Below are positions 6,523 to 19,158 of a DNA stretch of 64,000 bases, in pieces (position 1 is the stretch's first letter; each line of letters begins with the position of its first letter). Source of the stretch: Adineta vaga (taxonomy: Eukaryota > Animalia > Rotifera); contig CP075496.1 of NCBI GenBank assembly GCA_021613535.1, forward strand, positions 3,596,001-3,660,000. Reading direction: 5' to 3'. A model generated the notes under the pieces. It ran no database searches, was not told where the DNA came from, and worked only from the letters and a program-made list of their open reading frames with translations. Both the position numbers and the translations under genes were made by a program.

Positions 6523-8540
6523 CGTATTCGTTCCATATCAATATTGAAAGTCGTTAAAAAAAAAACTTAACTGAATTTATTCGTCGATTCTTTCGTGACT
6601 ATCATACATGTTAGTTAGTAAGGTATATATTGATTATATTTACTTCGTTTCACTCATCATGCATGATATTTGAATGATAGAAAATAGAAAGGAATAAGGT
6701 GAAAAACAAGACAGATGATGATATTGATTAAAAAGGTGTAGGCAGTTTGCTCGTATGAATATAAATAATCATGTCTAGAGAAATAAATTATATTCGAATT
6801 TATAAAAACCACGAACATTTTCAATATGATTTTTAGATTATCATTATAAATCATGCTATTTCAACTTATTTCTTTAGAAAAATTGTCAACATGTTTGGAT
6901 AGTGACCTATGACTAACATGAAATGTTTTGTAGAAAATAAATCTCTATAGTATGAATACATATTTTCAACATTAATGAGAGGTGATATTTTTACTGGCTG
7001 ATTTCTTTTATCAAAACAATATTCGACAATAATGAATCACATTAACATAAGTATAACTTATCAAAGTAAGATTAAATGAAGACACAATGATCAGTGTTAA
7101 TATTGGTATATAATTCTAACACTTTCTTTATGTTTGTCTATCTGTCTACCATCACTTAGTTGAGAAAGTAAAAGAATAAGATTGTATCAATAATAGATGT
7201 TAGTTATCGATGATTGCTCGGTCAATCGAGAAGGAAAAGAAAAACGTCTGTCTGTTCAATGGCATATATGACACATCTGTTCTTTTACTATTGTTTGTAA
7301 TATATACATCTGTATATAGGTCATCAGACATGAATACAATGCAAAATTATGTATGAATATGAAATTAACATTTCGAAATACTAATTAGTCATTTTGAGAG
7401 AGATATCTTTTAATTTATATAAAAATTTCAATTAATCATTTACTTCAATCATTTTCAAAAGCGAATATCTCATAGCAGAAAGGATTCTACAGAAGTCATT
7501 TTAGTTCATTAATATTGTATAGATTTTAATTTGAAATTTTAATTTTTTAATGTCATATGTTTTTTATAATTACTCTATGGATAATTATAATTCAATATTC
7601 TGTTTTTCATAAATGATCTGCTTTGTTCGCATGTACAATAGTTTAATGTGTCATTTTAATAATAGTACTTGAACAGATAATACTGATCATTATAAACAAA
7701 TACAAAAGAAAGAATCTACTATCATTGTTCTTTGTCTCAATGAATAATGATGATAGACAAATTAGATAGAAAGCTCTTTTCAAAATATCTTATGTATAGA
7801 TGCAATCATCTCGATACTTTTTCTCTTATTTCTGTATTGTTCGTTTGTTTAAAATGAATTCTTATCATTTGATAATTAAGCATATGTATAGACATGTTCT
7901 AATGAGATATGATACATTCGCGTAATCGAGATACTTTCAATGTCTTAATAGATTTCTATCTATGTAATCCAATTGATTAGTATATCGTACATTTTCAGTC
8001 TATGTCTATTCATGATTGTGTCATTGTTAGATGACAAAAAATTGAGATCCTAGATCAAACAGGATGTGGTACAAATCGTCAATGATATTATTCATAACAG
8101 TGAAGCGTCGTGGACATGTTCTCAAACATAAGAAAAAGGTTATACAGCTCAACACGTCACTATTATTGTGTGAACAAAATTACTAGATTTGGTAATGAAA
8201 ATATATACATTGAAAAGGACACGCTATTGAATGGTGACCGCTTTCATTTACATTTGATCTGGTCAGACAAGCATACGTAGACAAAGAGCAAGGTCCGGCC
8301 AGACACGACAATAATAAATGAGAAATTTTCTTTTCTTACATATTGTTTGAAGACGATGAGTTACGTGCTGTGGCAGCTGGTCAATGTCCATGGGCAATGA
8401 ACAAATATCTGAACAAGAAAGAGAACCAGAGATGCAATGACGACGCGTCTCTCTGACCGCGTCGGCAGCAAATTGAATTAGCGATTATGTGTCTGTCTGG
8501 CTGTCTGACCTAAAAATGAAAGGCAAGCAAGCGAAAGAAA

Positions 8541-8580
8541 GAACGAGCGAGCGAACGAACGACCGACCGACTGACCGAGA
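8541..8580. repeat. Degenerate (GANC)n tetranucleotide array
   Basis: gaac gagc gagc gaac gaac gacc gacc gact gacc gaga. Confidence 0.7.
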
Positions 8581-9577
8581 ACGTTTGGTTGGTCAAGTGG
8601 TCTCGTGTTATATGCTTCAGTTAGATTACGTCTCCCTTTCTCATTCAATGCTCGCCGAAAGCACAAAGGAGAACAAGAACATAGCAAGCACGTTTCTTCT
8701 TCTGTTCTCATACGTCATCGTTTTCTTTTCTACTTTAAGTGTACATATATGAATGTGTATGCGGACAGAGTCCATTAGTTGGCCTTGAACGATGACGATC
8801 GTGTTCTCGTTCTCGTTCTTCTTCTTGTTCTTCTTCTTCGCCTTATCCTATGTACGGTTTTATATTCAACGACAAGCACAAAAGCAAAAAAATGAGAGAA
8901 CAGTATCTAGAGAAAAGAAAAGAAGGAGAAAGAGAGAGAGAGAGAAAACGGTCAGTTGTTGTTATTTGATGGTCAATCAGTAGACGACAAAGACTACGCA
9001 ATCATACTTTTGAATATATTTTTGATCTGACGCGTGTTTTTCCAAAGTCATTCGTATCAAATAACAAAAATAGTAGATTTACATTGCAAATTCTTTTCAA
9101 CATATAAATTCTACTCTAATTCAACGTCTGTGAATAAAAATATAAATAGGTAAGTTTTGGAGTTAATCTACTTTACGAAAATTATATCTACTGTATTATT
9201 TAATCGTAGAAAATTTTCTAAAAACATGTATTTGTCATGAAAGTTATAAGATTAGAACTTCAAATTAGTCAATAGTAAATCGCTAGTAATCTGTGGTATT
9301 ATTTAATAAACAGTGTTAGAAGATGAGATCTGTGTCGATGTGTTCCACCTTTTCAATGAAGTTTCCGTGAAGATTTTTTCGTAGGCATGACACTTATTAT
9401 CATTAAAGTTCGATTTTTCATTAGAATAGAAGTAGTGAAAATGAACAGACACTACTGATGTCAAAATATATGTGTTCAAAAAAAGCAACGACATTTACTA
9501 TCACTGAGTGTGTCTGTCTGACTGTCTGGCTGCTTTCTGTTTGTCTATTCAGCCATATATACAAAGCCTAGACGTTT

Positions 9578-9603
9578 TGTATGTATGTATGTATGTATGT
9601 ATG
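9578..9603. repeat. (TATG)n microsatellite
   Basis: Direct reading: tgtatgtatgtatgtatgtatgtatg. Confidence 0.85.
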
Positions 9604-11422
9604 CTGTAATAGTCTAGTTGTCCTCCAGCAAAACGAGCCGAGAGAAAAGAAAAAGAAGAAGAGTGAACAAGCGACTGGCTAGCTAGCCGAATCGACCAAT
9701 TGAACAGTATAGTACAAGTCATAATTACTGTTCTATTGAATACATCGATTGCTGTTGAGTGCATATGTCTGGCGCTGTTGTCTGGGTCAGTTCTATTTCA
9801 ATCGTTCATTCACCTTGGTCTTTTTTCTCTTTCTACCATATGTACACATTGCGCATATATACATATATATATATATATATGAACTATATTTGCTTTCCAT
9901 CCATTATTTCTTTTTTTTTTGAGTGGAGTATATATGTACAGGTGCTTCGATTATTGTAGGTCGGCGCTAACGACAGGTCAGTCTCGAGTTTACTCTTTTG
10001 TACATTGTTGGTAGTGATGATCGTAGTAGCTTACATCATATATGCGCCGCCGTCATTGTCATACCGCGATGAGGAGTTGCGCAATATACTATTCCCTCGT
10101 TCTTTCTACTACATTCTACCTTCTTCTACACGAGTCTTCCTTGAGCGAATATACTGACCGTGTACATCTACGTATGCCTATATATACATATACGTATTAT
10201 ATATATAGATATATATATAAATACATATATATGTATATAGATGTATATGCATTAGGTAAGAAACTGGTCCGAAACAAGCACTCAGTCAGATAATGCACAT
10301 AAAATGACATTGAATGATTGAGAGTGAGGCGAAGATGAGCAAATTTTTCTCTTTACTCTCTCACTATGATGCGTGTCGTGTCCCTCGCCTTGCTCCTGTC
10401 GTAATCGATGATATTGGATTGATTAAAGTACGAGTAGAGTAAAGTGCATACAGTGAAGTGGTAAAATTCAATAATTTTAACAAACGAACATACATATACA
10501 TGTGTATCTCCATTCATTTCTAAACCTTGACCTCGACCACGTATGAATCTCTTTTTCTCCTTTCACATTTAAAACTATTAGTTTCTGTGATATAAAAAGA
10601 TCTACGTGTGTTTAAGGTAAGATCATATTGAGAGTCTTCATAGAAAACTAGTATAAGTTTTTCATTGTTCTTTTTCATGGTATTCTTAATTTATCATTAC
10701 GTTGGTAATTTACAGATTATATGTATCATCAGTTTCTTACAAAGCAAAAGAAGAAGAAGAAGACGAAGAAAGTTATTTTTCTGCTTTGTGTTGTTTTTTC
10801 ATACGCTTTAATCAAGACATGACGAGAAAAAGGAGAAGGAAAGAAAGGAAAGAATTTTTAGTAGTGCAAGGGTCGATTAGAATAAGACGAAAACATCAAA
10901 ATACTGCTGTCGTGGCACTAATTATGCAAGGGTAAAGAATCAAAACTGGAAACAGCTGAGTGTCACCTTATTTTCAAAAACAAAGCTTTCATTCTCTCTT
11001 TTTCTTTTCTGTTATCAATGGATAAATGAAAGAAACGACAAATTTTTTTGTCTTTATGAAAAGACAAAGTAAGAATAGAACATGAAGATGAATGGACATG
11101 CTTGCTGTTTGTCTCTTGTTCTGTCGAAGTAGAAAATTCGACTCCATCGCTTGCGTATATATGCAGTGACACATAAAAGCAACAACAACAATATTATCGT
11201 CACGACTAGTGTTTGGCGCACTATCGCAAGCACGCGGGCAGCCTTTTGACATATAGTTCAAGGTCGTCTTTCCTTCTCCGTCCCTAGACAACAATGTATA
11301 CTTGCATGTGTCCTTGAAAACACGAGAAAAAAGGAAGGGAAAAATAAAGAGAGAGAGAGAGAGAAAAGGCTGATTCAAAATAAGTAGAAAAACAAGATGA
11401 AGTAGAGAAAGGTTCCCGTTTA

Positions 11423-11458
11423 ATGATGATGATGATGATTGTTGTTGTTGTTGTTGTT
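11423..11458. repeat. Compound (GAT)n(GTT)n microsatellite
   Basis: atgatgatgatgatgatt followed by gttgttgttgttgttgtt. Confidence 0.85.
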
Positions 11459-12053
11459 CTTCTGAATTCGCGTCCGTCCGCGTAAGAAAAATATAATCGA
11501 TTTCTCTCTCTCTCTCCTTCTCGTCTTTTTTTCATATTCATCAATATAACTATAAATGTCCGCATTTGAGGATGACATGATCTAGTTCTATGGACGACAT
11601 AATATTGATTATTTGAAAAGTTTTAAAATCAGAGAGAAGATAGGCGTAAATGACAAACAATAACTTCATAAAAATTTCTTTACCGATCATTTTAAACTAG
11701 AACGACTATTTCATTCAGTTTTTTTCCGTTCAGCCTTCCCGTTTTTTTTTGTTTCATCGTCATAATATGAACGCTCACATTCATTATCGCGTACCGATAA
11801 TGGCTAGACAGGAATTAAAGCATCACAAATAAAAAACAAAGAAGAAATAAAAAGAATATTGGACAATACATACGATCGTCGCCGTTTTATGTGTATAGAT
11901 CGGATGAACGAGGAGGGACAAGAGACAACAATAATTTTACCGTTCATAATCGATTACACAACTTAATCTCTATTCTTTTCTCTCTTTTGTCATTCTAGAC
12001 CGATAAGGTCAGTTTTTTTTACGTGGCCCACTGAATAAGTCCATTGATCACCG

Positions 12054-14473
12054 ATGATTCCCGCTACTATCGTCTCACCACATTCAGTCAATACATTGGA
12101 TCGTATTGCTTTTTGCAAAAGTGTCCGTGAAAAACGCAAGCAACTTCAATTAAATCATCAGACAGATGGTGAGTTCTTTTATCTTTTCATCTATACATTA
12201 TAACATATGAATCATGATGTTTTGTTTTGTCTGAATAGAAAAGGATGACATGAATTCATCTGTCGAGAATGCTTTTCTTACACAAATGCTTCAATCATCG
12301 AGTTCTTCTGTCACATCTTCATCATTAGGATCATCATTAAGTATCACATCACTCTTACGAAAAGGTAATTATTCATCACCATCATCGTCGCATCGAACGG
12401 CTACTAGTACTTTGACAAATATTTTACCGGCTTTACTCAATGGAACATTACAATCACCACGTACTGTTTCACCAATCGGTACGATAACAAATGTTATTTC
12501 AATGAATTCTCCGACAAGTACAAATACAACAGATACTCTGGTTGATATGAAATCTTCAACATCCTTACCTGTATCACCTGCTACTCATCTTTTCAACAAT
12601 AATCAACCTAATTCAACACAAAATGATGTTTCTACTCCAGCTAATTCTTCGCCGCCTCGTTGTCGATCCTATCCTATGGCTGCACTGACAAAACGAGCTT
12701 CATCTCCTACATCTACGATCTCACCTTCAGAAACAACACCAGTCACGCAATCATTTCCATCTCCAACATCATATTTATTAGCAACTGCTTCATCTTGTCC
12801 TTCATTTACAACAACTACAACAAATAATATGATAACTTCATCAACATCTCCATCACCTGATGATACAACACCAAAAATTGTTCGATCCGCTTCAGTCAAA
12901 TCATGTGCATCTGATTCAGGCGTATCATCATCCAGTCCATTGTCAGATAATAATATTGTACATGTAAGTATTCTTACAAATAAAAAGCCCTCGTAGCGAT
13001 TCCTTTTTTATTCTCAATGTAAAATAAATATTATTCTTAATGTCTATAATAACAATGATATTTTGTTTCATCTAGGTTTTTCGTACAAATCATATTGAAC
13101 CTAACAATCAACCTCAAATGACAACGGGTAGTCGGAAACGGAAATCTCTTGCTCATTTCTATGATGAATTGAATAAGGATAAGAAATTTTCAAGTGAAGC
13201 TACCGTTTCATCTGGCTTTGCAATGCCAACATCAACAACAAATCCCAACATTCCATATAGTCAACAAGAAGCACTTGCGTTTGGTTATGCTCAATATGCT
13301 CTTATGCATACTCTTACTCAACAATTTCGTGTTAATTATCCTGCTGCATTTTTACATGCTGCGGCAGCATCGGGATATTTACCGATACCACCATCACTGA
13401 TGGCTGCTGCTGCTGCCGCAGCCGCTGCTTCAGCGAATGGAAATCAATCAATGCCAACAGAAAAAGTTCGTGAACGTCGAAAACAAGCACCAGAAAGTGA
13501 CAATAATAATAATCATATTCATTCAACATCATCATTAAATGATCAACCATATCGACGAGAAACGTATCAAACATTACTTGAAAGTAGTCGATTATTAGGA
13601 CAACAACAACAACACCATCAAAAGCTAATGAAACCAGTACCAATCGATTTACGTAAACATAATGGAACGAATCGACTGAATGATAATAGTAAGTTCCTTC
13701 TTTATTGATCATTCATTTGTATTATTGAATATTTTCAAAAAAAAGGCCCTCCTTCATCTAATTGTCGATATTCATCTTCTTCATCTTGTGCATCACCACC
13801 GAATTCACCACCATGTTTAAGTCCACCGAAAGAACCTAATAATGATTATGTATGTATTCCAAAAAAATTAATGCCTGTTATTGGTGCACGTATTAATGAT
13901 TGGCTTGAACGTAATGTTAATTTTGCTCTATCACTTTCTATCATCCAAGAAACACTTGATAATACAAAAGATCGATATCTACTTCTTTCTCGTATTTGGC
14001 ATCGTCTATTATTAACAAGTATGATTGAAAATAGTTTCGAAATTTATGTAACAAAAGATTTACAAATCACTAATGATATGTTATCTCCATCGTCAACAAC
14101 TATAACCTATCCGACAGAAAATGATGTTAAACAAATTGAATCGTTAATAACTCGTGGTAAAACATTAGAAATCGATGAAATTGGTTTTAATCTGATTCGT
14201 GAAATGATTATCTATAAGGAAGGTAAAACATTATTCAATAATTTAAAAGGAAATCTATTTGAAAAAGCTGAATGTCAAACGCAAGCGAAATTGACAGCCT
14301 GGTGTTTAACACGTGTTAAATATTCGAAAATCGTCTTCTTTTTATGCAATATCTATCAAGTTAAAGAAGATGTTTTTGAACGCTTATTTTGTGCTGGTTC
14401 AATGCATCAAAGTACACCAATACATGCACATTTAGAAAGATTTTTAGATTTAACTCTATCTATGGATATTTAA
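12054..14473 (+). CDS. Nuclear-receptor ligand-binding-domain protein without DNA-binding domain (NR0B/DAX-1/SHP-like, NR2-type LBD), ~726 aa
   Basis: Four exons (12054-12168, 12239-12963, 13076-13688, 13746-14473) splice in frame to 2181 nt. The last ~200 aa show LBD signatures: LERNVNFALSL...KDRYLLLSRIWHRLLLTSMIE, YPTENDVKQIESLITRGKTLEIDEIGFNLIREMIIYK and KYSKIVFFLCNIYQVKEDVFERLFC...TPIHAHLERFL. No C4 zinc fingers, and an in-frame TGA lies three codons before the ATG. Confidence 0.8.
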
Positions 14474-16453
14474 AGTCTTTTTTTTTTGAAAATTTTGTTT
14501 TGTTGTTTTTATTTCAAATTATTGTATATTTCCTTGCTTTTATTCTCGTGTCCGGCGCAATGAACCGTCAGACGGTTTTCTGACTTTAATTAGAATTCTT
14601 CGATGCTTTTAAAGTATCGCTAAAAAAACAAAACCAACAGTCGTCAATTGTATTTGTTTTAAGAACTCTTGAAAATCTATCTGTATCTATTTGTATGTAT
14701 ATGTGTGTGTTGTGTAGAACAGTTTGTTTGAACATGTTTTATCTCGTTAAGAACTTCTTTTATGTATCTTTCGAATCCGAACAAATAATTCAATGTAATA
14801 TGACGATAACAAAACAAAAATTAAATAAACGAATAGATTGTTTTTGTGTTTGCATAGTCTGACGATGAGATAAACACATATTTGTCTTTGTGAACCTTGA
14901 CATATTACGAACTTTTTTTTTTCCTGTCAAAAAAAGAATCGGTATTATGTTGTTAGTCTGACAACAGTGATAGACGTGTTTTGTTGTCCTTGAAATGAGA
15001 GAAGAAGAAGAAGAAGAGAAAAAGAAAAACCCGAACGAATAGATAATATATTTGATGATTATTATTCATGTCAAAAATAGATCTTGATATATTTTCAATA
15101 CTTGAAGGAAAAATATAAAGATAAGGATTTGTTTATTGATGTTTGTTCGAGTCTTTTTTTTCTGCTCCATCGATGAAAACAATACGAAAGAAAAATATTT
15201 TCAGTAATCAAAATCATATCAAACAGATTATTTATTCATCTGTCTTCTTTTCGATTGTATTTTTGTACTTTTATGCAAATAATTCAATACTTTCATCGTT
15301 TTAGAGAATGATGAATTTACATATTATTATTTAGATGAGAATTTTGATAGATAGAAAAAAACGATGAAGAAAATTTTTAGTGTGAATAGAAGTTGATTTA
15401 GTACGAACATTTTTCATTTAGAGATAGTTTTTTGTATCTCCACGGAGTAATAATACTATGCTCTATTTCTTTTTTTTTATTGCAATCGTTTACAGTTGAA
15501 TCAGAAATAATAATTGAAGTACATGAAACGATAGTGCACAAAAATTTCAGTTATTTCAGTGTTGTTATTAAGCTTCATGTAATGATAACATACAATAAAC
15601 TTATTTCTAGATCAAGATGAATCGGAAAATAAATTTAATGCTCGATCAAATATTTATCAATATTTTCTTTTCTCGGGTCGTTATTTTTAAGTTTAATACT
15701 TTCAGAGATGCTACTAATACAACATTAGTACGCTCCTATATATCGTTAGTTTCTCAAGAGAAAAGACTAGCACTCTTGAGAAATCTATTTTTTATTGATT
15801 CTTTTTAGTTAAAATAATTCAACTACTTTAATGATTTCTATTCATGTTTAAACAGATCGAATGTATTTATCATATATGCATAATGTCGTCTAAACAACGA
15901 GAAAAGAAAAAAACGTTGAAATTATCAAGATTTAACCCGAAAAAAAAAGAATGAGATGGGAGATTTGCTAGTGTTTTGATGAAACAATTGAGAAAAATAG
16001 TGAACAACACAAACAGACACAGATTTAGAGACACGTGGCGAAACCAATTATAGCGAAGTTTAAATAATGAAAGAAAACTTTAAAACGAAAAGAGAAAGCG
16101 AAATTTTTATATCGATAAGATAGATATTAGTTAAGAAGATTGAGTATATATATATATGTACGAAGCGAGCAAGCAAATGAGAAAGAAATAGTCGTCATCA
16201 CAAAATTGAAGAGAAAAAGTAGTGAAGAGCACCACAATGATACTCTCAAAAGAAAGAAAATAAATATATTCTATGGACAGAGTTGGTTGTAGAGACAGAA
16301 AAACAGATCGATAAGTTAAGAATGAATTTATAAACACTACTGTTGTCTTTTTCCATATTCAGATAGTTCTCTCCACCGGCAAACAGAGAATCTGTTGTGG
16401 AATGCATTCCAATTCATCAGCACCAACATGAAACTTCCACAAATTTGTTTATA

Positions 16454-19158
16454 CTAGATTTCAATACACCATTCATCATTAGACAAAAGCTTCTTTTTTT
16501 TTAACAAGAATAAAATTATTTATACACCATCGATGATTGATCGTGTTGGCTCGATAATAGATGATATTTGTGATTCATCATCACTAGTATTATTACCATC
16601 ATCATCATCATCATCGTCGTTAACCGTTTTTTTACGTAATAAATAAAGACTATCGGAATGACGAATTTGTTGTTTTCCATCATCTCCTTCATTTTCATCA
16701 TCTTCAAAAGTAACTGGAATAGATTCAGAATTGACTAAAGTTGATTCGATCATATTTGTTTGCAAGGTTTCTTGATTATCACCATTTGGTAAAGAACTAA
16801 AAATTATGAAAAGATTCATGTATATGTTTTTTTCTTCAAATACTTAACCATGAATAAGGCATTTTTGCAATAGATTTCTTATATTCTATGAGTGAATGAA
16901 TGACTTACTCGACGGTTTCTGCTGTTATTTCTTCATCATTACTATTATGATTGTTCGATATTTCATTAATTGATTGTTCTTGGTTATTATCTAAATCGTT
17001 AGATGCTTGCTCTTTTTCTTGATTGATATCTTCAGATTGTTCAATATCATCATGAATACCGTTAACTAAAATTTCTATTGGTCTAAAATAAAAATCATCA
17101 TTTCTTTTACTTAGAGATGTCTAAATAAATTACTGTGAATTGTCATTAGTAGTAGTCGATATATCTTCACTATTATGTTCAGTTACGGTTGTTAAATTTT
17201 CATCATTTATTGATTCTAAGGGAACGTCTTCTTCTAATAAAATATCATTCGGTGTTGTGATGGATGATTCCTGCTGATCATTTCCATTAGTAACAATTTC
17301 TTCTAAATAAATTTCGAATGAAAATGTGATGTAACAAACTAAACTATCTTACCATGATTATTTGTTATCTGTTCTACTTCTTGTCGGCGTAGTTGATCTT
17401 CATATAGAAGTAAATTTCTCTGACATATACATTCAATATCATTCATCCATTTGGCTTTTTGTTCATTTAATTCTCGTGAATTATTATTATTCATTGCTGG
17501 ATTGGAATTATTTGCTGAGTTATTGCTATTAAAACTTCCTAAACCAACTGTCATTCGTCGAAGATTTGATAATGAAAGTAGACTATTCGTATTTGTCGTT
17601 GTTCGATCAATATTCTGATTTAATGACGAATTCACAGATAAATCCATTGGATCAAAATCAACTTTTAATAATGATTTATTACTTTTCATTGCTATAGCCA
17701 TTCCACATATTCCACTAGCTTGAATATTATTTTCTCTTAAATCAAGATATTGAATGACAGATGATTCAGCAATAAATTCAGCTAGAGCAATAACAGCTTG
17801 ATCTGTTAATCGACAATTTCGTAGAATTAATTCATTAATTGTTCGATTTGTTAATAATGCATCACGTAATAGAAATAAACCTTCATTCGTTATTGGATTA
17901 TGACTCAAATTTAATGAACGAATCGTTCGATTATGTAATAAAGATTTTGCTAAAAAGCCGACGCCTTGATAAGTTAATTGATTCGATTGAAAATTCAATT
18001 TATAAATCGTATTTTGATGTGTATGATGTTCATCATATTGACTTAATTGTGATGCAATATGAGACATACCATTATCTTGTAAGGAATTTGAACGAAGGTC
18101 CAAAACGTTAAGAAATTGCCCACATGAACGAATTAAGTCATTTATCAGTATGGAATCTTGCACTTGTAGACCTAATTATAAAAAAAAACACAATCATATT
18201 CTGTATCATTAGAATGATTCTTTGGAAACAAAACGAAAAAGAAATAAAGTAACTCTTCACGTCATTTCTGATGAAAATATATATGAAATTGCAAACTGCA
18301 TTCATACAAACTAAAGAAAAATGTCGATTTTGATTCTATTTCATTATCATAATCGACAAGATTTTTGTTCGAATGAATTCTTTGAATATAAAGAAGCGTT
18401 ATATGATATCAAATCTAATCGGAATACATACGATTATCACATAAATACAGTTCACGTAAACATGGACATGCTCGAATATTTTGTATGAGTTTTTGTAATA
18501 TTTTTCCATTTAATTGACATGATTCGACATGTAATTCATATAATGTTGTTGACATTCGTAATGACCGACCAAAACCTAACATACTTGTATCGTCAAAACG
18601 TATCGAATTCATATCTAATCTTTCTAAAAAACGTGTTTTTCTCATATATCTTGTTAATGCTTGATAACCTTGAAAATTAATCGATCGATTATTGGATAAA
18701 TTCAAATGTGTACATGATTCATAATATTCAATAACATCGAAAAATTGTACAAGGGTTGAATCATCGGAAAAAGATGAATCAACATCTAAGAGATAAAAAC
18801 GACAACGTGAAAGAATTTCTTCAATTGCATCGATATGTTTTAAATCTAAACGTTCATTAATAATTTTTAAACATTCAAGACGATCATGAAAAGATTTTCG
18901 TCGATCATCCATTGTATTTAATTGTTCTAATAAACAATTTAATGGACGTATTTGTAAACGTTGACATGCACCACGATAACGTTGTAAAATAACACCAAGT
19001 GATGATAATGGTTGATCAGCTAATGGTTCAGGTGCAATTGATATCATACGCAATTGAGATTCATCACTTGGAAAACGTACACGACGTTTATGACTAACAG
19101 TTGAAATAGGTTTTTCTTCATTGGAAACGATATTGGCACTTTCGTCTTCAGAAGACAT
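16454..19158 (-). CDS. PPP1R37: Protein phosphatase 1 regulatory subunit 37-like (LRRC68), leucine-rich repeat protein
   Basis: N-terminal KRRVRFPSDE (RVxF PP1-docking motif in a PPP1R37-like context), RI-type LRRs (IEYYESCTHLNLSNN, LRELYLCDN, IQYLDLRENNI) and an acidic low-complexity tail. The frame and stop of the last exon are uncertain (16454 or 16479). Confidence 0.85.

Follow-up and report, generated by a model that had tools for sequence, protein, structure and literature searches.

In its genome, the bdelloid rotifer Adineta vaga encodes, at positions 12054-14473 of a 64,000-nucleotide (nt) stretch of contig CP075496.1 (assembly GCA_021613535.1, positions 3,596,001 to 3,660,000; hereafter the window), an orphan nuclear receptor (NR) with a C-terminal ligand-binding domain (LBD) and without a DNA-binding domain (DBD). 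With a probability of about 0.75, we consider this gene to be a bdelloid member of the NR0B family (DAX-1 and SHP; nr0b1/2 in spiralians) and one of two retained ohnologues. An initial annotation of the window had proposed either that it is an NR0B orthologue of deep divergence or that it is a convergently evolved receptor-binding repressor. The former is supported by DBD-less relatives, by the position of the rotifer sequences in the LBD tree (99/99), by relatives named as Dax1 or NR0B members, and by a predicted DAX-1/SHP-like fold.

NR0B receptors were long regarded as a vertebrate novelty, and molluscs and annelids are now known to possess them. CgNR0B of the oyster Crassostrea gigas lacks a DBD (PMC4070562), and nr0b1/2 of Platynereis dumerilii was described as the only gene orthologous to dax-1 and shp in a study that also reports the loss of the family from arthropods and nematodes (PMC13012086). 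Invertebrate NR0B receptors had therefore already been published, and the rotifer gene adds one highly derived member to a family described in Spiralia. No description of NR0B in rotifers was found in the literature searched, and with this gene the known range of the family comes to include rotifers (Gnathifera).

Ligand-binding domain and relatives

All searches, folds and alignments were run exon by exon, and coordinates refer to the + strand of the window unless stated otherwise. The LBD fold is located at 13859-14470, entirely inside exon 4. Using phmmer with exon 4 against 1.84 billion representative proteins, we found 90 relatives at E <=0.001, thirty of them under 1e-10. These proteins belong to rotifers, molluscs, annelids, nemerteans and a brachiopod, and a profile of the spiralian members reaches echinoderm proteins as well. 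The closest proteins were found in the bdelloids Rotaria (77%) and Didymodactylos (62%), and orthologues are present in Rotaria, Didymodactylos and Brachionus. The names given to the relatives in their sources are inconsistent: they include Dax1 in the scallop Azumapecten farreri, NR0B1 in the sea slug Plakobranchus ocellatus and NR0B2-like in the starfish Asterias and Acanthaster, and the rotifer members are publicly annotated as "unnamed", "NR LBD domain-containing" or "NR2C1-like".

The Pfam domain PF00104 was detected in 47 of the 64 homologues scanned (best E 8.5e-20) and in 29 of 30 neighbour clusters of the ESM-Atlas. AlphaFold2, supplied with an alignment of thirty domains, returned an all-helical domain with a predicted local distance difference test score (pLDDT) of 92.8 and a predicted template modelling score (pTM) of 0.89. 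The structure prediction proposed in the initial annotation thus yielded a model with the helical-sandwich fold of NR LBDs; its best Foldseek matches were exclusively NR LBDs, and in structural comparison DAX-1 and SHP ranked first and second or vice versa as the two top matches. As modelled, the last ~200 residues are an NR LBD fold closest to DAX-1 and SHP.

We assessed the placement within the family by maximum likelihood, with 39 LBDs in the tree (LG+C20+F+G4 by posterior mean site frequency). Rotifer LBDs are monophyletic (100/100) and lie inside the spiralian NR0B clade together with scallop Dax1 (99/99), with the echinoderm NR0B2-like proteins branching next, outside the clade of spiralians and rotifers. 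Five DBD-adjacent LBDs of the same genome fall outside the NR0B group (94/83), including those of a COUP-TF-like (C2:5.379 Mb) and a PNR-like (C3:8.694 Mb) receptor, both recognised by motifs. The LBD phylogeny suggested in the initial annotation therefore separates the rotifer proteins from the COUP-TF-like and PNR-like LBDs of their own genome. Regarding vertebrate NR0B1 and NR0B2, which are absent from the tree, structure favours DAX-1 and SHP and the sequence profile is non-discriminating; the link to vertebrate NR0B relies on a published phylogeny of spiralian and vertebrate receptors (PMC13012086).

Absence of a DNA-binding domain

The genome of A. vaga comprises 100.8 Mb in six contigs, with ~30% G+C. 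The DBD domain PF00105 was found in 187 places genome-wide; among the 150 matches listed, none lies inside the window and the nearest is ~415 kb from the window start. A hidden Markov model (HMM) of the DBD made from ten DBD exons of the same genome detected control loci with E 1e-25 to 1e-30, and found nothing real in all open frames of the 64-kb window or of the 10-kb ohnologue locus, nor any DBD in the 4 kb surrounding the orthologues of Rotaria and Didymodactylos. Similarly, PF00105 was present in none of the 64 homologues scanned with Pfam, and a regular expression for the C4 zinc-finger pattern had no hit in the 107 fetched homologues or in the 90 significant relatives. A candidate relic DBD in exon 1 of the ohnologue (TLDRIAFYKSVREKRKQ against CEGCKaFFrRtv; DBD HMM, E 0.011) was rejected, as half of the alignment lies in an intron and the window copy gives no score. 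In agreement with the initial annotation, which had seen no C4 zinc finger, the gene product lacks a zf-C4 DBD.

The gene model points in the same direction. The coding part of exon 1 (12054-12168) encodes MIPATIVSPHSVNTLDRIAFCKSVREKRKQLQLNHQTD and the first base of a split codon, and is followed by exon 2 (12239-12963), which is Ser/Thr-rich and bears the motifs described below, exon 3 (13076-13688) and exon 4 (13746-14473, including the stop TAA at 14471-14473). The four exons sum to 2181 nt, which corresponds to 726 codons and the stop TAA. RNA-derived contigs from runs containing the locus were aligned to positions 9500-15400 of the window (5901 letters). All three introns (12169-12238, 12964-13075 and 13689-13745) have GT..AG ends and are spliced out in RNA contigs, and a single contig of 2118 nt covers exons 1-4. 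The joint of exons 1 and 2 (12168>12239) is present in RNA contigs, and two of the three joints, including 13688>13746, were also found in a library recorded as RNA-Seq. The gene is therefore spliced and transcribed as predicted, with the four-exon frame of ~726 residues of the initial annotation confirmed exon by exon. The 3' untranslated region extends over 14474-14880, with RNA contigs ending at 14840 and 14880 and an AAATAAA signal near 14822.

RNA contigs start at 11997 and 12000 and are continuous up to the ATG at 12054. They span without gap two in-frame stops 5' of this ATG, TAA at 12036-12038 and TGA at 12045-12047, so the in-frame stop from which the initial annotation had argued that no DBD exon joins through exon 1 is part of the transcript. 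No joint to any upstream exon was seen in the RNA contigs aligned to this region, which are unable to define the true 5' end; splicing of an upstream zf-C4 exon into exon 2, which would have contradicted the initial annotation, was likewise not seen in them. The protein starts at ATG 12054, because the motif of exon 1, V/K-x-VRE-x-R-[RK]-Q, is the extreme N-terminus of the monogonont-type homologues too.

In the RNA contigs of some runs, in-frame length variants were observed, namely a 9-nt deletion at 12809, in a Thr-rich stretch, and, in a contig of one run, a GCT insertion at 13402, in the Ala run of exon 3. These variants may be allelic or strain differences.

NR boxes in exon 2

Exon 2 contains two motifs of the LxxLL type. 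The first, LTQML (12277-12291), in the context ENAFLTQMLQ, is found unaltered in both the ohnologue and Rotaria, and reads ENAVLNQLLK in Didymodactylos. The second, LPALL (12424-12438), in the context TLTNILPALLNG, is also identical in the ohnologue and in Rotaria; its Didymodactylos counterpart, DLNPLL, lies ~15 residues further along the protein. The initial annotation had listed three short hydrophobic motifs, and the coordinates of all three are exact. LTQML and LPALL stand as LxxLL-type boxes kept in three bdelloid genera. The remaining one, LSITSLL (12337-12357), is a hydrophobic patch of the form L-x4-LL, not LxxLL. The ohnologue and Rotaria have LSIPSLL in its place and Didymodactylos has lost it, so that it occurs in the Adineta-like and Rotaria copies only.

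Two L-x-x-[LM]-L motifs were observed in the N-terminal exons, compared with 0.23 expected after shuffling (P ~0.02). Both fall within the parts of exon 2 that are conserved best, with 24 of 25 residues identical around LPALL. Motifs related to LXXLL are reported for NR0B proteins of vertebrates and spiralians (PMC13012086), and vertebrate Dax1 has three N-terminal LXXLL boxes (PMC5423462). The spiralian and echinoderm NR0B proteins have a common LxxLL box at residues 17-41, to which the first bdelloid box is plausibly homologous, and the spiralian proteins possess an extra SLLRNLLCxGK ~35 residues before the LBD.

Comparison with known receptors

Similar to the rotifer gene, the spiralian NR0B members (CgNR0B, scallop Dax1 and Platynereis nr0b1/2) are DBD-less and combine a C-terminal NR LBD with an N-terminal LxxLL-type box. 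They match the rotifer LBD with E 1e-13 to 1e-8, and the rotifer clade is nested among them (99/99). However, divergence is much greater in the LBD of the rotifer protein (22-27% identity), which is missed by Pfam; its N-terminal region is longer (~500 residues against ~200-330), and its C-terminus reads HLERFL in place of the canonical LLKEML. The rotifer protein also lacks the LBD-adjacent SLLRNLLCxGK and the invariant PMDLS of spiralian NR0B, with PIDLRK in the bdelloids.

Vertebrate DAX-1 (NR0B1) is likewise DBD-less and carries LxxLL-related boxes in its N-terminal part (PMC5423462). Its architecture of 65-70-residue repeats was not seen in the rotifer protein, which also lacks the PCFXXLP repressor-helix motif, and the two LBDs share 17% identity in the structural alignment. 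SHP (NR0B2) and the echinoderm NR0B2-like proteins are DBD-less as well, and the echinoderm proteins have an N-terminal LxxLL box; unlike the rotifer protein, they are short (echinoderm ~270-340 residues), with nearly no N-terminal region. The NR2 orphans (COUP-TF/NR2F, PNR and TLX/NR2E, TR4/NR2C) reach profile scores equal to that of DAX-1 and, in contrast to the rotifer gene, contain a zf-C4 DBD.

Evidence against the assignment and alternative explanations

Several results weigh against the assignment to NR0B. The HMMER search proposed in the initial annotation gave no PF00104 match, at E up to 10, to exon 4 or in the six-frame scan of the genome, and a direct Pfam scan of each exon returned no domain; the LBD pattern in the last ~200 residues is thus supported through homologues and structure and not by a direct match of the family model. 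A family profile of thirty aligned domains, searched against PDB, scored COUP-TFII at 1e-23, PNR at 3.7e-23, DAX-1 at 4e-23, RXR at 2e-22 and SHP at 3e-19, so that DAX-1 does not stand above COUP-TF, PNR or RXR and NR0B and NR2 are not separated by sequence profile. The tree contains neither vertebrate NR0B nor named NR2 sequences, and its rotifer stem branch is 2.09 changes per column, a length for which the tree tool warns of long-branch joins. At the site of the PCFXXLP repressor helix, as defined in vertebrate NR0B (PMC5423462), the window gene reads SLSIIQETLD: Pro and Phe are gone, and the P-x-F-x-x-L stretch is lost in rotifers, where other spiralians have IPEFxxLS. The helix resembling activation function 2 (AF-2) at the C-terminus is degenerate, with HLERFL for the canonical LLKEML. 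Finally, the monogonont-type homologues have no LxxLL-type box in the region before the LBD, and the motif conservation in related species expected in the initial annotation therefore holds for LTQML and LPALL in bdelloids and fails in monogonont orthologues.

Some of these results would be expected if an NR2-type receptor (COUP-TF, PNR or TR2/4) had shed its DBD within rotifers and now mimicked NR0B, without being its orthologue. Database names of the relatives are NR2-like, e.g. NR2C1-A-like for Brachionus, COUP-TFII and PNR score as high as DAX-1 with the family profile, and the long branch together with the Pfam failure allows misplacement. Nonetheless, all significant matches of the window LBD are DBD-less, with no DBD-bearing NR2 among the 90, and the rotifer proteins lie inside spiralian NR0B (99/99), apart from the COUP-TF-like and PNR-like LBDs of the same genome. 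The position of the N-terminal LxxLL box, shared with spiralian and echinoderm NR0B, and DAX-1 and SHP as the two best structural matches also argue for orthology, and we regard such a convergent loss as improbable. Far more remote still is a gene-model artefact or decaying pseudogene, which could account for the lack of a Pfam domain in any exon; several runs, including one recorded as RNA-Seq, contain spliced RNA contigs, both ohnologue frames are intact with a ratio of nonsynonymous to synonymous changes (dN/dS) of 0.20, and orthologues exist in Rotaria, Didymodactylos and Brachionus.

Within the NR0B assignment, the role of the N-terminal boxes can be read in two further ways. The boxes may be incidental in an NR0B member that acts via its LBD only, as heterodimer, dominant-negative partner or scaffold, or via other modules such as the degron-like motif or PIDLRK. 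The motif excess is modest (P ~0.02), and the monogonont orthologues have kept the LBD, the N-terminal VREQRRQ and the SDSG motif without any LxxLL. Moreover, in the Dax-1:LRH-1 structure 3F5C it is the LBD, with its PCFXXLP helix, that docks (PMC5423462). However, the stretch equivalent to PCFXXLP is itself lost in rotifers, and the boxes are retained in three bdelloid genera and lie in the best-conserved parts of a fast-evolving exon, with the 24 of 25 identical residues around LPALL, which makes incidental boxes unlikely in our judgement. Alternatively, the bdelloid NR0B may have been re-engineered: having lost the P-x-F-x-x-L stretch and the AF-2-like helix, the protein would therefore act mainly via a disordered arm of 500 residues that holds lineage-specific NR boxes, a phosphodegron and PIDLRK, and its gene would be part of a conserved receptor-to-NR0B feedback loop through the AAGGTCA at -49 and a DR0-like (direct repeat 0) element at -1.5 kb. 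We consider this scenario rather unlikely; if true, it would mean that a circuit of the SF-1/Dax1 type is kept in duplicate in animals without males.

Predicted mode of action

Under the preferred assignment to NR0B, the corepressor action of the protein is inferred from DAX-1 and SHP. By the same analogy, the protein would be unable to bind DNA itself. It would enter the nucleus, probably via the RKRK signal of exon 3, and dock on DNA-bound receptors, with its N-terminal LxxML/LxxLL boxes in the AF-2 groove of the partner, with its own LBD surface, or with both. The docked protein would then dampen the activity of the partner receptor. The DSGxxS-like motif suggests a phosphorylation-controlled turnover, and the AAGGTCA at -49 suggests that the gene may be driven by a monomer-type receptor, as SF-1 drives Dax1.

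In Platynereis, the knock-out of nr0b1/2 affects endocrine genes (PMC13012086). With its two copies under purifying selection and conserved half-sites in the promoter region, the rotifer gene is a candidate endocrine or germline regulator in the asexual bdelloids. Its LBD also bears on the limit of sequence drift, as the DAX-1/SHP fold appears to be kept below the threshold of Pfam detection, and it serves as a warning for annotation, since screens based on HMMs only would undercount receptors in fast-evolving genomes.

Second copy of the gene

The ohnologue is located on another chromosome (G000:C1:8.78 Mb), where all four exons are present with 64-82% identity. Identity is 82% in exon 1, 64-72% in exon 2, with the peak over its motif-bearing ends, 74-82% in exon 3 and 76-79% in exon 4. 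Both frames are intact, and the comparison of the two copies gives an overall dN/dS of 0.20 with a dS of 0.75. Because of this low ratio, both ohnologues are, as judged from their coding sequences, under purifying selection. In the LBD tree, the ohnologue and not the window copy pairs with a Rotaria protein (99/95), which suggests that the two genera diverged after the duplication; taken by itself, the tree gives no date.

Conserved elements upstream of the gene

The block TTCTAGACCGATAAGGTCA (11993-12011), which lies upstream of the gene or in its 5' untranslated region, is identical in the ohnologue locus (L006 6449-6467, - strand) and in Rotaria. It includes GATAAGGTCA (12002-12011) and, 49 nt before the ATG, the extended NR half-site AAGGTCA (12005-12011). 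In the Rotaria (L028) and Didymodactylos (L030) loci the block was found ~40-55 nt before the start codon; Didymodactylos retains CTAGACC..GTGAGGTCA at -42, with the AGGTCA core kept. Because a pyrimidine tract and AG precede the AAGGTCA-containing block, TTCTAGACCGATAAGGTCA may just as well be an element of a splice acceptor or of a start site. A 31-nt block, GGCTAGACAGGAATTAAAGCATCACAAATAA (11802-11832), ~-250 from the ATG, is 100% identical between the ohnologues, and its core is present in Rotaria and Didymodactylos. The upstream blocks are thus identical between the ohnologues in spite of a coding dS of 0.75.

Further upstream (~1.5 kb), a DR0-like half-site pair is located at 10523-10535 on the - strand (AACCTTGACCTCG on the + strand, CGAGGTCAAGGTT on the - strand). 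CGAGGTCAAGGTT was found in three of the four loci, at -1526 in the window, -1550 in the ohnologue and -1492 in Rotaria. AAGGTCA occurs across the window at chance level, and a homotypic cluster of NR5A/ERR sites was considered and rejected, as the 2 kb around either copy hold a single proximal and a single distal site. On sequence comparison, it is the position of the upstream half-sites that is conserved, not their number.

The region of ~5.5 kb located 5' of the gene (6523-11990) is without long open frames, which is long for a compact genome, and its G+C rises up to 0.40 at 8001-9000. At 9697-10681, no RNA contigs of the aligned runs were found. The nematode SL1 (spliced leader 1) sequence was not found in the genome.

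Other protein features and neighbouring genes

In exon 2, RSASVKSCASDSGVSSSSPLSD (12883-12948), identical between the ohnologues, combines RSAS, similar to a basophilic kinase site, with a DSGxxS phosphodegron-like motif. The pattern RSxSVKS..SDSG.xSSSPxSD is common to bdelloid and most monogonont-type homologues, and RSASVKSCASDSGVSSSSPLSD looks like a kinase site followed by a DSGxxS degron. Exon 3 encodes the nuclear-localisation-like signal RKRK (13133-13144), the Ala run (13403-13426), YQTLLESSRLL (13565-13597) and PIDLRK (13640-13657). The invariant P-x-D-L-S of spiralian NR0B/Dax1 proteins (EPMDLSCK) resembles a CtBP-binding motif in form. In bdelloids a comparable position is taken by PIDLRK, which monogononts lack. 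In six monogonont-type homologues (P0007, P0008, P0010, P0014, P0020 and P0023), the Ala/Gln-rich region of the bdelloid exon 3 is replaced by the cysteine-rich motifs CDKECC, CDCKEC, YCDCPxCN and CxCxDC. Together, these four motifs may constitute a zinc-binding module within a receptor that has no DBD.

A leucine-rich-repeat gene is located 3' of the receptor gene (16520-19158, - strand), and likewise at the Rotaria orthologue (L028 9347-10436), which points to a conserved local gene order. The LBDs of the COUP-TF-like and PNR-like receptors of the same genome are interrupted by introns. Further receptors of this genome are NR5/6-like (C2:8.978 Mb) and probably RXR-like (C2:11.18 Mb), the latter assigned by its DBD motif only. 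On the same chromosome as the window, ~415 kb before its start, a single open frame (G000:C4:3180720-3182379) contains two zf-C4 matches followed by one LBD, and looks like a nuclear receptor of the 2DBD type.

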